In this document: in pieces, positions 9,348 through 20,268 of the stretch
Numbering within the stretch: the first letter of the stretch is position 1
Layout: every line of letters starts with the position of its first letter
Virus record (IMG/VR): IMGVR_UViG_3300027985_000843
Coordinates: 248,001 to 312,000 of that record
Strand: one strand, 5' to 3'
Length of the DNA stretch: 64,000 nt
Notes under the pieces: model-generated
Database searches by the model: none
Told to the model about the DNA's origin: nothing
The model's input: only the letters and a program-made list of their open reading frames with translations
Made by a program: the position numbers and the translations under genes

Positions 9348-10021
9348 ACATCTACGACTACGACCGAACCGCTGCGGCCACCCCCATGAGCGCTGAGGAG
9401 TTCAAGCGGGAGGTCGAGAAGCACCTGAACATCGGCGACCGTCAGGTGAGCGTGCGAGTGGACACGAGCTTCGGGACCGTCGGCGTGTACATCAACCTTG
9501 TCAACCTCCCGAAGGGTGTGGGCGGGGCCGGGGGCGGGGCGGAAGCCGAAAACAATCGGATGATGTTCTCGGTGAGGTTCCCAGACAATCCTGCCGACAA
9601 GGTCAAGGTGGAACAGACCGTCTCCAGGATGGATCGCAAGTACAAGATGCGAGCGAAGTCCGGCCACCCGGCACAGGTGGCGAAGTACGTCGCCGACTTC
9701 ATCAACAAGGTGGTGAAAGAAGTCGAGCCGAAGTTCACCCACACCAAGCAAGCCTACGACTACGATCGGTCGGGGAGCTACGACCGCTCTCGGAACGAAG
9801 TGAATCCAGGCGAACACGGAGTGTTGCAAACCATCTTCAAGTACCGTGATCGCAGCTTCGGGTACGCTACGTTGGCGAAACACCTCACCCCATTTCAACG
9901 AGGACTTGTCGACAAGCTCGTGAAAGAAGGCTACGTGAGGGAGGCAAAGAGCGACGAAGGCACAACCTACAAGCTCACATCAGACGGTGAGCGAGCCCTC
10001 AACAACTACAGGGGAACTTGA
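9344..10021 (+). CDS. hypothetical protein with N-terminal and internal YDYDR motifs; possible C-terminal winged helix
   Basis: MNIYDYDRTAAA...AYDYDRSGSYDRS...LVKEGYV...YKLTSDG. Confidence 0.75.
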   Translation: MNIYDYDRTAAATPMSAEEFKREVEKHLNIGDRQVSVRVDTSFGTVGVYINLVNLPKGVGGAGGGAEAENNRMMFSVRFPDNPADKVKVEQTVSRMDRKYKMRAKSGHPAQVAKYVADFINKVVKEVEPKFTHTKQAYDYDRSGSYDRSRNEVNPGEHGVLQTIFKYRDRSFGYATLAKHLTPFQRGLVDKLVKEGYVREAKSDEGTTYKLTSDGERALNNYRGT

Positions 10022-12117: not shown

Positions 12118-12190
12118 TGGGCGCATCAAGAATTGAACTTGAATCTCACGGGTATCAGCCGTGCGTGGAGAACCACCCTACTATACGCCC
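12118..12190 (-). tRNA. tRNA-Ile(GAT), atypical D arm
   Basis: acceptor GGGCGTA/TGCGCCC, loop CTGATAC, T loop TTCAATT. Confidence 0.75.
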
Positions 12191-12217
12191 GAATTGTTTT
12201 GGTGTATCCATTCAGCA

Positions 12218-12751
12218 ATGGGACACCTTGAAGTCATCGCCGGCTCGATGTTCAGCGGCAAGACCGAAGAACTCGTCCGGAGGGTTCGCCGAGCTGTAAT
12301 CGCTCGGCAAAAAGTGCAAGCATTCAAACCTGTCGTTGACAATCGATACGACAAGGAGAGGATCGTCAGCCACTCAGGAGTCGCCATCGACGCGGTGCCC
12401 GTCCCCAATGCAGCAGCCATCGTTGGCCTGGTGGACAAGGACACGAAGGTCATCGCCATGGACGAGGTCCAGTTCTTCGATGCCGGTATCGTTGTCGTGG
12501 CGACCGAGCTAGCCGACAAGGACTACAGGGTCATCATGGCGGGCCTGGACCAAGACTACCTAGGGAATCCCTTTGGCTCGGTGCCCATCCTCATGGCCCT
12601 CGCAGAGAGAGTCACGAAGGTCCAAGCAATATGCTCTTGCTGCGGCCAGGAGGCGTCTAGAACGCAGAGAGTCGTCAATGAGGGTTCCACGGTCCTGGTC
12701 GGGGGCAAAGAGGCATACGAGGCCCGTTGCCGGGCTTGCCACAAGCCCTAG
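12218..12751 (+). CDS. tdk: thymidine kinase
   Basis: GSMFSGKT Walker A, IAMDEVQF, AGLDQDY, CSCC...YEARCRAC zinc site. Confidence 0.95.
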   Translation: MGHLEVIAGSMFSGKTEELVRRVRRAVIARQKVQAFKPVVDNRYDKERIVSHSGVAIDAVPVPNAAAIVGLVDKDTKVIAMDEVQFFDAGIVVVATELADKDYRVIMAGLDQDYLGNPFGSVPILMALAERVTKVQAICSCCGQEASRTQRVVNEGSTVLVGGKEAYEARCRACHKP

Positions 12752-13102: not shown

Positions 13103-14269
<1,167 letters not shown>

Positions 14270-16528: not shown

Positions 16529-16602
16529 GGTTGCGGGAGTAGGAATCGAACCTACGAAGCCGAGCGTATGAAACTTGGTTGGGAGCCAACACCCTTCCCA
16601 CA
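16529..16602 (-). tRNA. tRNA-Met(CAT)-like, atypical
   Basis: TGTGGGA/TCCCGCA acceptor, loop TTCATAC, weak anticodon stem. Confidence 0.65.
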
Positions 16603-16682
16603 CATCTGCTGCCCCTAGGAGGGGCCGTAAAGCGACTTTCATCGTCCTCAGGTCCTAGGTGACCTGAGCCTTGCGAAGACTC

Positions 16683-16758
16683 GGTAACGGGAGCTGGATT
16701 TGAACCAGCGACCTTCGGGTTATGGGCCCGACGAGCTTCCAGACTGCTCCATCCCGCT
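16683..16758 (-). tRNA. initiator tRNA-fMet(CAT)
   Basis: three G-C pairs TCGGG/CCCGA in anticodon stem, loop CCCATAA. Confidence 0.9.
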
Positions 16759-16782
16759 ATGGGTCCTGCCTAAGCAGAACCT

Positions 16783-16945
16783 GAGAGCCAGTGTGCTGTC
16801 ACGCCAAAGACTCAGGTAAATCCGGTGCTTATGGCTGCCCGTCTTCCAACGGGTCCGCTTCCGGTCAGGACGTGAGGTCGCTTTCGCTCACCCCCGAGTC
16901 ACTCTTTATAGGATGGCTGCCTCTAAGCCTACCTCCTGGACTCTC
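16783..16945 (-). ncRNA. stand-alone mimic of the 23S rRNA GTPase-associated centre (H43-H44) with ~95-nt insertion
   Basis: rc CCAGGAGGTAGGCTTAGAGGCAGCCATCCTATAAAGAGTG-[insert]-CGTGACAGCACACTGG, closed by non-rRNA GAGAG/CTCTC helix. Confidence 0.85.
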
Positions 16946-16946
16946 T

Positions 16947-17022
16947 TGGTCGGGATGGTCGGACTCGAACCGACGATCTCCTGTCCCCCAGACAGGCGCC
17001 CTTGCCGCTAGGCTACACCCCG
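16947..17022 (-). tRNA. tRNA-Pro(GGG)
   Basis: cloverleaf, loop CTGGGGG, CCA. Confidence 0.95.
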
Positions 17023-17246
17023 TGGACCACGATGACCTTCCGACCTTCACCGGTCTTGCCTCCAGCCGGGAGAGCTAACGCCGTCGTGGCGGCGACCCAT
17101 CCGGGTCGGGATCTATCTTGATCCAGGGGGTTTGCCCTGAGGGGAAGGCCCCTGGAACGTGCGGCAACCAACCGCTTCTTCGTGAGGAGATCACGCCTCA
17201 CTAGCCACTGGTCAGGTGGCACGTTGTATTCGCCCCGAAGGGAGAA

Positions 17247-17389
17247 GGTCGGCCGTCCCGGAGTCGAACCGGATGCTTGTAAGGGTCGAAGGAGCTGCTT
17301 CCCTTGCGAGAAGCGAGGTACGACACTGGAAAGAGCTTTTGGCTCCAGCTCCTAAATGCTGGCGGGGGACCCTCCCCCTATGACGGCCA
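17247..17389 (-). ncRNA. tRNA-like RNA A with ~70-nt variable-arm domain (8-nt loop ATTTAGGA)
   Basis: acceptor, D hairpin, CCAGC/GCTGG arm, insert ending CTTACAAGC, T loop TTCGACT. Confidence 0.85.
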
Positions 17390-18396: not shown

Positions 18397-18469
18397 ATGC
18401 TAGAGACAGGAATCGAACCTGTAACCAACGGCTTGATAGGCCGTAGCTCTACCTATGAGCTACTTTAGC
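18397..18469 (-). tRNA. tRNA with ATC anticodon (nominally Asp, A34) on a non-Asp body
   Basis: GCTAAAG/CTCTAGC, A73, ACGGC-CTATCAA-GCCGT, canonical D and T arms. Confidence 0.8.
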
Positions 18470-18748: not shown

Positions 18749-19327
18749 TCAGAGGCGGCTCGCCCCGTTCTTGTGGGCGTAGAAGCCTACCTGTCGACCA
18801 TCCTCGATGAACTGCTGTACCGAGAAGGCCATGTAGCTCGATACGAGGGCAATGAACGGTAGGAACTCGCCACCCTCACAGGTAGCAGCCCCAGCCACGT
18901 CCTCGTCATCGATCTCGAAGTTGGCGTCCCACACGACCTGGCCGAACGTACCGTCGGGCGCGAGGGCACCATGCAGGCAGGGGGTGCCCGCCTTGCGGAC
19001 GAACTTCTGAACGGTTCGGCGAGCCTCCCCATTGTCCAAGCAGTCGAGCACAAGGTCAGCTCCACCAAGAAGCGCCTCGACGTTGTCTGAGACCATCTTG
19101 TGGGGATTCGTCTTGATCTTGAGCCCGAACAGGAACTGGAGACTCTGTGCGAGACCTAGGACCTTGTTCTTGCCCACCGACGGTTTGCCGTGGAACTGGG
19201 ACTTGACGTTCTTCTGCTCCACCCGGTCGAAGTCGATCAGGGTGAAGTCGGCGTCAAAGTTGCGAGCGAACTGCATGAAGTGGGATCCAAGGGCCCCGAC
19301 TCCTACCACAACGATCTTCATCTTCAT
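18749..19327 (-). CDS. ThiF/MoeB-family E1-like adenylating enzyme
   Basis: VGVGALGS, DFDRVEQKN, LDCLDN, candidate catalytic Cys in ATCEG. Confidence 0.9.
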   Translation of the reverse strand: MKMKIVVVGVGALGSHFMQFARNFDADFTLIDFDRVEQKNVKSQFHGKPSVGKNKVLGLAQSLQFLFGLKIKTNPHKMVSDNVEALLGGADLVLDCLDNGEARRTVQKFVRKAGTPCLHGALAPDGTFGQVVWDANFEIDDEDVAGAATCEGGEFLPFIALVSSYMAFSVQQFIEDGRQVGFYAHKNGASRL

Positions 19328-20268
19328 CCTTCCAAGTCCTTGTAAGACCTGCGACTGATAATTCTACCCATAGCAGAATCAGTGATTCCAAACTTTCGGG
19401 CCAGAGAGGCTTTTGTCCAACCTTCAGCAAAAAGACCACGTGCTTCCAATACTTGGTCGTCGGACAGCTTCCTGGATGGCTTCCAATTTGGCTCCCGAAC
19501 AAACCTTAACTTGTATAAACAACAAGCCGGGAGATGGTTCTCTACCAGGGACTTGAGCTTCACGGCCTCAGCTTTTGTGTTCACAGCTATCTTGAACTGT
19601 CCTGGTCGAACAGAGCTTTCCCGAACTACAGTACGTACACCCAGCGAGCCTAGCTTCTCGGAGAGTCGAGAGACACAACCCTCAGAAAAACCATCTGTGC
19701 AGAAAAATAACTGACCTTGTCGATCATAGGTACCGTCGCCTGCAAACCACTGAGCAACAGACAAGGGTGTCAAGACAAGGTCAGAGGGAACTATCTTCAC
19801 ACCCCTGGGGTACCACCTAGCCCGCTGAGTTTTGAACTCACTGTAACAAGGTGTATACAGCAAACGACCGCCCCGCCCATGAATGACACGATCACCCAAG
19901 CACTTGGACCGAGGTGGGACGGGAATGATGGCGGATTCACAACCGTGTTCTACAAGCAGCACAGTCAAAGAGTCCAACCAACCCAACCGAACACGGCCCT
20001 GCTCCAATCGAAGACTCCCCTTAGGGTCCAAGGAGCCATCCCCCAAAAGGACGCCTTCTAAGACCTGCGACACAAGGTCCCAGTCGGCTCGGTGCTCTCG
20101 ATCACCTAGATACCTTGCATTCTGTTCCTTAGAGGAACGTACGAGAACACCCGTCTTCTTCAAACGATTGAGAACATTCCATGTAGAGCAACCAAGTCGG
20201 CGAGCGATAGAGGACGCGCTCTCGCCCGACAGATAGGCTTCGGTCAAAGCTTGGTGATCCATGATCAA
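19324..20268 (-). CDS. free-standing LAGLIDADG homing endonuclease with terminal HTHs
   Basis: LEGVLLGDGSL and AQWFAGDG motifs; inserted between Ubl and E1. Confidence 0.85.
   Translation of the reverse strand: MIMDHQALTEAYLSGESASSIARRLGCSTWNVLNRLKKTGVLVRSSKEQNARYLGDREHRADWDLVSQVLEGVLLGDGSLDPKGSLRLEQGRVRLGWLDSLTVLLVEHGCESAIIPVPPRSKCLGDRVIHGRGGRLLYTPCYSEFKTQRARWYPRGVKIVPSDLVLTPLSVAQWFAGDGTYDRQGQLFFCTDGFSEGCVSRLSEKLGSLGVRTVVRESSVRPGQFKIAVNTKAEAVKLKSLVENHLPACCLYKLRFVREPNWKPSRKLSDDQVLEARGLFAEGWTKASLARKFGITDSAMGRIISRRSYKDLEG

Follow-up and report, generated by a model that had tools for sequence, protein, structure and literature searches.

What would a virus do with a piece of the ribosome? Viruses are defined partly by the absence of ribosomes, and phages are known to carry tRNAs, tmRNAs, translation factors and a few ribosomal proteins; to our knowledge, no viral gene has been reported that copies a piece of rRNA. 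The question is raised by a 64,000-nucleotide stretch of viral DNA (hereafter, the window) in which a preliminary description, made from the sequence alone, had placed a stand-alone copy of the GTPase-associated centre. This centre comprises nucleotides 1051-1108 of 23S rRNA (the top of helix H42, together with H43 and H44) and is the site at which uL11 and thiostrepton bind.

A tRNA-flanked copy of the GTPase-associated centre

The sequence quoted in that description is present verbatim on the minus strand of the window, at 16945-16783. Its likeness to E. coli 23S 1052-1107 had been put at about 46 of 56 positions; computed against the E. coli rrlH gene (L001), it is exactly 46/56, and the differences, at positions 1058, 1061, 1070, 1080, 1082, 1089, 1090, 1095, 1097 and 1101, include the changes that had been listed. 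When the whole of 23S rRNA was compared with the 64-kb window by short-word BLAST, window 16939-16903 aligned with 23S 1052-1088 (32/37, E 9e-6), and the next-best match had an E value of 1.5. The matched parts of 23S are 1052-1088 and 1091-1107 only. As had been proposed, the flanks are not ribosomal: the element lies between genes for tRNA-Pro(GGG) and tRNA-Met, no rRNA continues on either side, and a GAGAG/CUCUC helix extends its closing helix. Rfam LSU rRNA models gave no match at gathering score in the window and none at E values up to 10 in 16600-17300, and Rfam 15 as a whole returned only tRNAs and tmRNAs from the window (at gathering score), from 16600-17300 (at E up to 10) and from 13 related loci. 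The insertion of about 95 nt that had been seen in H44 is also present, with its placement refined by family alignment: it falls between 1090 and 1091 and consists of 92 nt followed by a UUUG linker, so that the H44 hairpin is not continuous in the window. In the order of a minus-strand transcript, the element and the adjoining genes are laid out as follows.

16947-17022 (minus): tRNA-Pro(GGG), called by ARAGORN and by Rfam (tRNA, 62.2 bits); its 3′ end is 1 nt upstream of the element
16936-16945 (minus): 5′ strand of the closing helix P1, GAGAGUCCAG; covaries, with four Watson-Crick pair types family-wide
16910-16934 (minus): H43 equivalent (23S 1057-1081) with loop UUAGAGGCA (1065-1073), identified by BLAST and by covariation of pair 1058-1080
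16905-16909 (minus): junction triloop region 1082-1086 (AUAAA), in which the tertiary pair is A.A
16901-16904 (minus): 5′ strand of the base of H44 (G1087, A1088, G1089, U1090), 97-100% conserved in the set of relatives selected on the 3′ half
16809-16900 (minus): variable inserted domain of 92 nt, closed by GACUC.../...GAGUC; the corresponding family helix is paired in 36/36
16805-16808 (minus): single-stranded UUUG linker joining the insert to G1091, identified by family conservation
16793-16804 (minus): tip and 3′ strand of H44 (G1091-C1102), with loop GUGACA and G at 1095; pairs G1091-C1100 and C1092-G1099 are invariant
16783-16792 (minus): A1103 and the 3′ strand of P1, CUGGCUCUC; A1103 stands opposite G1056, non-Watson-Crick as in rRNA
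16683-16758 (minus): tRNA-Met(CAU), called by ARAGORN and Rfam, 24 nt downstream of the element

The final five bases of the P1 5′ strand correspond to 23S 1051-1055, the top of H42, and H43 bears G1058-C1080, A1061 and G1070. The tertiary-contact bases U1060-A1088, G1071, C1072, G1091-C1100 and C1092-G1099 are all kept, the exception being 1082-1086, at which the window copy is the sole member of its family to have A.A. Because of this apposition, together with G1070 and G1095, it may fold less tightly than typical members. Taken alone, the element folds with an unexceptional minimum free energy (z -1.38), so that its signal resides in the comparative data and not in energy. The spacer upstream, at 17023-17255, was considered as a second structured RNA and rejected (z -1.53).

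A phage-borne family with a conserved fold

The preliminary description had suggested a search for homologues in phage genomes, and this search recovered them, insert included and pairings conserved. When viral contigs were scanned for exact matches to the H43 motif, at least 119 loci were identified; a scan with the family's own 3′ half also identified at least 119, of which 85 were new, giving more than 200 distinct viral loci for the two scans together. Thirty-six short members served to build a covariance model, R1, which confirmed elements in nearly all of the 85 new loci, mostly at full length and in several loci as two copies, and the window element scores 87.9 bits (E 4e-23) across the full model. 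The reciprocal comparison succeeds as well, in that R1, built from phage homologues, recovers the genuine E. coli GTPase-associated centre (L001 1109-1171, 49.6 bits, E 9e-12). Two copies with different inserts lie in one tRNA array in L055 (at 5138 and 5456), L202, L204, L131, L190, L143, L170, L197, L195 and L139.

The family is restricted to phages. Across 185,579 prokaryotic species, each represented by one genome, the 3′ motif occurs 44 times, with about 33 confirmed elements, and many of these occurrences are on MAG contigs with 15-25 tRNAs or in prophage-like regions. Cultured phages that carry the element include Pseudomonas phages pf16, Astolliot, Milchi and UNO-G1W1; Aeromonas 4_4572, Cronobacter GAP32, Pectobacterium CBB and Serratia BF; the Erwinia pEa_SNUABM phages, Yersinia fHe-Yen9-03/04 and a Vibrio phage; and Xanthomonas phages XacN1, XaC1 and XbC2. 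Their copies are either without annotation or lie under a 'hypothetical protein', and annotation pipelines currently overlook the element or place short ORFs on it. Several short GenBank 'phage' records that match the query, OR845016, OR847528 and KM209255 among them, proved to be plain host 23S rRNA or L11 genes, that is, contaminating bacterial sequence.

The common plan of the family begins with a closing helix, P1, of 6-10 bp (the top of H42), followed by H43 with its rRNA loop and the 1082-1086 junction. It continues with G1087 A1088 G1089 U1090, an insert closed by a helix of its own and the UUUG linker, and ends with the H44 tip GC-GUAAnA-GC, A1101 C1102 A1103 and the 3′ strand of P1. 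Among 92 unique sequences, all four types of Watson-Crick pair are represented in P1; 91 of the sequences form pair 1058-1080 (UA 35, GC 33, AU 17, CG 5), pair 1057-1081 is AU in 65 and CG in 14, and, as in rRNA, 1056.1103 remains G.A or A.A. The structure that RNAalifold predicts independently contains P1, H43 and the H44 tip, along with the helix closing the insert; the last of these shows four pair types. In a second, independently selected set, 92.2% of cells are paired, compared with 67.8% in shuffles, and the covariation score is 0.492, compared with 0.121 for shuffled alignments (0/500 shuffles) and 0.05-0.13 for slid controls; this alignment was fitted to the model and is therefore biased toward structure, but the margin is nonetheless large. 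The tertiary pair 1082-1086 is U-A in 60 sequences, C-G in 40, A-U in 17 and non-canonical in 10 (n = 127). Covariation thus backs all three helices of the GTPase-associated-centre fold (H42 top, H43 and H44), and the element is homologous to the rRNA centre with its architecture conserved. The earlier characterization of a structure-preserving module, as opposed to decayed rRNA, is strongly supported by the more than 200 stand-alone homologues, in which compensatory changes keep the pairings.

An identity of 82% to E. coli rRNA over 56 nt is also what one might see in non-functional rRNA debris, whether a decayed captured fragment, an assembly chimera or contamination, but the family data have already refuted this reading, and the residual chance that we would assign to it is vanishingly small. 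Flanking rRNA is absent here and, among the matches listed, from about 120 loci with a single exception: the alignment to 23S extends over only 30-40 nt in every listed H43-motif locus except L057, which is a true piece of rRNA. The sequence found in the window also occurs, without a difference, in an independent IMG/VR contig (L116, 371,739 bp) and in two DNA runs. A control scan with the sarcin-ricin-loop motif, which is equally conserved, matched only 3 viral contigs as against more than 119 loci, so that rRNA contamination cannot explain the size of the family. Covariation has preserved the pairs, and the members share derived characters (the insert site, UUUG, G1089 and U1090-A1101), all of which the window copy has and which indicate one maintained lineage as opposed to repeated captures of host rRNA.

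It is the content of the insert that varies. Inserts of 40-350 nt are almost always present and always follow the same position, 1090/1091; the site and the closing helix are conserved, and within the linker, UUU and G are nearly invariant, with the full UUUG found in 66/92 elements of the set selected on the 5′ half. The preliminary description had spoken of a grafted domain, a term that does not fit one specific module, since 152 inserts fall into 106 clusters with no motif common to all; the position is better regarded as a hypervariable insertion site. The 92-nt insert in the window is lineage-specific, and its closest relative, in L072, resembles it only at the ends. The only recurrent piece is a submotif near the 3′ end of the insert, GCACCCC-G(U/G)AA-nnGG-UAAGGC, which folds into a tetraloop-capped hairpin of 3 bp and is seen in about 13% of clusters (carriers include L006, L010, L022, L033, L081, L086, L095 and L097). 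The idea that inserts are copies of other parts of rRNA was rejected: compared by BLAST with E. coli 16S and 23S, they yielded 3 weak matches, and shuffled inserts yielded 1. A rare variant without an insert, at L014 3700-3790 (plus strand), has a continuous H44 and is followed by an apparent tRNA.

Genomic setting and expression

The window has 45 tRNA genes for nearly all codon families, all on the minus strand and spanning 371-28034. A full-length EF-Tu gene (13103-14269, minus strand; GTP_EFTU, D2 and D3 domains, E 6e-52) lies inside this array, and the 45 tRNA genes on one strand and the EF-Tu gene together give the window the profile of a huge phage. Several other features of the region were noted. 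One tRNA call, at 953-1042, has an odd 2-nt anticodon, and the tRNA-Asp at 18398-18469 has the anticodon AUC; a thymidine kinase gene (12161-12751, plus strand) overlaps a tRNA-Ile gene region; and a gene for a LAGLIDADG homing endonuclease (19324-20268, minus strand) adjoins an ORF of the ThiF family (18749-19327, minus strand) just upstream of the tRNA block.

Across the family, the element is encoded in phage tRNA clusters and on the strand of the tRNAs. For 69 of 93 unique elements there are tRNAs within 3 kb, and all 439 of the 439 such tRNAs are on the element's strand; 42 of the 93 elements lie 30 nt or less from a tRNA, and 9 are flanked by tRNAs on both sides. In two loci, tmRNA genes directly abut the element (L083 8163-8535 and L011 6723-6932, both on the minus strand). 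A further tmRNA gene, L209 1758-2108 (minus strand), is about 1.3 kb from the element in the same tRNA array, and one of the tmRNA genes in these three loci is permuted. Elements that have no tRNA neighbours may use a promoter of their own, and in L236, a 10/12 match to a sigma-70-like site immediately upstream of the element offers a weak indication of one. tRNAs with a CUA anticodon, which ARAGORN labels tRNA-Pyl and which are likely amber suppressors, lie near the element in L015/L056, L061 and L209 and hint at recoding of stop codons in those few gut and rumen phages.

None of the neighbouring protein genes is conserved across loci, the best neighbour family being present in 5/93, and the link to EF-Tu that the window had suggested is not general. 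A fused polynucleotide kinase-phosphatase/RNA ligase (Pnkp-RNA ligase) is encoded 1-2.5 kb downstream of the element in 9/248 loci (L236 2522-4714, plus strand; L008, L053, L061, L073, L127, L137, L138 and L244), and a gene for a CCA-adding enzyme is nearby in 12/248; one or the other recurs in only about 8% of loci. Genes for L11, L10, L1 and L12 were absent from the window and from the element loci, and phage-encoded L11 was likewise absent from the element-bearing isolates.

A relative from the rumen, L109, is present in sheep rumen metatranscriptomes. In one run, a contig of 162 nt matches L109 9815-9976 with no differences, where the element spans 9813-9975, and has a depth of 142 as compared with 24-42 in the flanks; in two other runs the element is in 8-20-fold excess. 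Depth over the adjoining tRNA gene is zero, an argument for RNA, and against DNA, as the source of the signal. Many rumen metatranscriptome contigs have the conserved halves in common and then diverge, suggesting that several family members are expressed there. For the accumulation of the L109 relative as a discrete RNA, these data, derived from crude contig depth, are supportive only. The window's own sequence was found in hydrothermal-vent metagenome DNA runs and in no RNA run.

Candidate partners, proposed function and alternatives

Which features of the centre has selection kept? Conservation in each half of the element was measured in the set selected on the other half. Nearly invariant are G1059, U1060, G1071, A1073, A1077, C1079, A1084 and A1085, as well as G1087, A1088, U1090, G1091-C1100, C1092-G1099, G1093, U1094 and A1098; in the 3′-selected set, U1060 is found in 65/65, G1071 in 61/61 and A1088 in 97%. 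The bases through which the rRNA contacts factors are relaxed (A1067 76%, G1068 70%, A1070 81%, A1095 89%), and positions 1061, 1096 and 1097 vary freely. In the ribosomal centre, the C-terminal domain of uL11 occupies the minor groove of the 1067 stem and forms hydrogen bonds to U1060-A1088 (PMC2175356), reading this pair and requiring the tertiary fold (PMC2175356, PMC6239185). The pattern of base conservation suggests that, among the phage copies, selection has maintained the fold and the contact with uL11 and has loosened the factor contacts, and binding of uL11 by the element is plausible, since the fold-forming bases and U1060-A1088 are nearly invariant. The other partners named in the preliminary description fare less well. 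The uL10-(L12)4 stalk is an unlikely one, because only the top 6-10 bp of H42 are kept before the tRNA and the H42 part of the uL10 site is missing, and the recruitment of translational GTPases is weakened by the relaxation of A1067, G1068, A1070 and A1095. The main uncertainty of a uL11 model is the compatibility of the insert with the protein: beginning two nucleotides past A1088, near the uL11 contact, the insert could hinder uL11 or replace it.

We propose, at roughly even odds in our own estimation, that the element encodes a small non-coding RNA of about 160 nt, belonging to a large phage-borne family, that mimics the GTPase-associated centre and binds host uL11 in trans, such that uL11-dependent signalling is lost or diverted. 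The RNA would be made as part of the tRNA-array transcript, from which the enzymes that trim the neighbouring tRNAs would release it; in the window, 3′ processing of tRNA-Pro(GGG) would set its 5′ end and RNase P cleavage at the 5′ end of tRNA-Met would free its 3′ side, with the closing helix shielding both ends. Once folded like the ribosomal centre, it would bind free host uL11, which would recognize the fold, and so serve as a trans-acting mimic of rRNA. The most likely outcome would be loss or diversion of uL11-dependent signalling. uL11 is the protein required by RelA, and we speculate, purely by inference, that one candidate target is the activation of RelA by uncharged tRNAs flooding the cell from a tRNA-rich phage. 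The more specific statement, that capture of uL11 by the free-standing copy keeps the phage tRNA flood and amino-acid drain from triggering the stringent response, or alternatively that the copy shields the ribosome from an attack on its centre, is one that we regard as a possibility, though an unlikely one. On ribosomes, uL11 is held cooperatively, so such a sponge may capture only free or newly made protein, and its physiological effect could be small.

Shielding might take the form of a decoy substrate, in which the RNA soaks up a host or competitor enzyme (an ADP-ribosyltransferase, nuclease or methyltransferase) that attacks the centre, and so protects translation, much as phage tRNAs replace or outcompete host tRNAs that have been cleaved. 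We know of no anti-phage system directed against the GTPase-associated centre, and a decoy would have to be more abundant than the ribosomes, which number in the tens of thousands. The location of elements among tRNAs and tmRNAs would suit such a role, as would the RNA- and tRNA-repair genes near about 8% of loci, although the latter association may merely track tRNA clusters. There is a precedent in Tre23, a toxin that modifies H44 at 1095-1098 (PMC8661411). A1098, G1093 and U1094 are almost invariant in the family, but the bases most exposed to enzymes (1067 and 1095-1097) are its least conserved, and on balance we consider a decoy improbable.

Two further explanations, equal in standing, appear less probable still. 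If the free centre, alone or with uL11, were to bind the elbow of A-site tRNA, RelA, EF-G, release factors or other GTPases, it would directly tune elongation, termination or the stringent response. The loops that contact factors and the tRNA elbow do keep the rRNA consensus in most members (A1067 and A1095, for example), the element is probably co-expressed with tRNAs, EF-Tu is encoded in the window and some loci have amber-suppressor-like tRNAs; yet positions that are invariant in rRNA through their factor contacts are relaxed in the family, and no factor gene is a conserved neighbour. Docking of GTPases on the ribosome also requires the sarcin-ricin loop and the L12 stalk, both of which the element lacks. 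Alternatively, the compact, ion-stabilized rRNA fold might be only a nuclease-resistant scaffold, with the insert as the working, phage-specific part. That the insert is nearly always present, at a constant site, with a covarying closing helix and over a length of 40-350 nt, speaks for this, as does the hairpin submotif common to some clusters. Against it are the lack of any motif common to the 106 clusters, the existence of the insert-less form in L014, and the consideration that simple hairpins would guard the ends equally well; nor would a scaffold need the near-invariance of the uL11-read bases across phages of unrelated hosts.

The preferred reading, a trans-acting mimic that binds uL11, can be set beside several known systems. 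In sequence and fold, nothing known is closer than the rRNA centre itself, with which the element shares helices, loop sequences, tertiary-contact bases and the non-Watson-Crick G1056.A1103. In contrast to the centre, it is free-standing, has H44 split at 1090/1091 by a variable domain and UUUG, carries G1089, U1090-A1101 and relaxed factor-contact bases, and has H42 cut to a short closing stem. The closest parallels in logic are the leader mimics of ribosomal-protein operons, among which the L10 leader (Rfam RF00557) imitates the L10(L12)4 site beside the GTPase-associated centre. Like the element, these are extraribosomal RNAs that copy an rRNA protein site, and both are expected to bind the free protein. 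Leaders, however, are cis-regulatory, lie upstream of the gene for the protein that they bind and copy a few contact bases, whereas the element is a phage gene in its own right, has no ribosomal-protein gene in its vicinity and copies a whole domain nearly base for base. RF00557 had no Rfam match in the window, where the neighbours of the element are tRNAs and not a ribosomal-protein operon.

In genomic setting, the closest parallels are T4 rnaC/rnaD and GOLLD/ROOL, none of which is homologous. The T4 species 1 and 2 RNAs (rnaC and rnaD), whose function is unknown, are likewise small and stable, come from the tRNA-coding strand of a phage tRNA cluster and are released by tRNA processing. Homology to them was tried and rejected: with filters off, R1 scored at most 4.6 bits on the T4 region, at places not falling on rnaC or rnaD. 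GOLLD and ROOL are large, ornate structured non-coding RNAs of phages, of unknown function and often beside tRNA genes; the element is much smaller and clearly derived from rRNA, and neither had an Rfam match in the window or in 13 related loci. Phage tRNAs and tmRNAs, which serve as a translation toolkit or in counter-defence, have the same neighbourhood, orientation and likely transcription units as the element, which unlike them is no adaptor RNA and copies part of the ribosome. For a virus-encoded, free-standing RNA made of an rRNA domain, we found no Rfam family, no GenBank annotation and, in the open-access and bioRxiv literature searched, no description, and within the limits of the open-access literature we rate the element as a new kind of phage RNA.

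Far from being an accident of one genome, this rRNA copy belongs to a family that is maintained, with covariation, in hundreds of phages, culturable ones among them. It offers a natural, minimal and portable GTPase-centre module with a tolerant insertion site, of use in RNA engineering and structural work, and it provides a handle on how phages manipulate uL11-dependent processes such as the stringent response, factor cycling and termination, or evade attack on the ribosome. If capture of uL11 or shielding of the ribosome is its true function, it would be the first virus-encoded mimic of an rRNA domain and a new class of host-takeover RNA.
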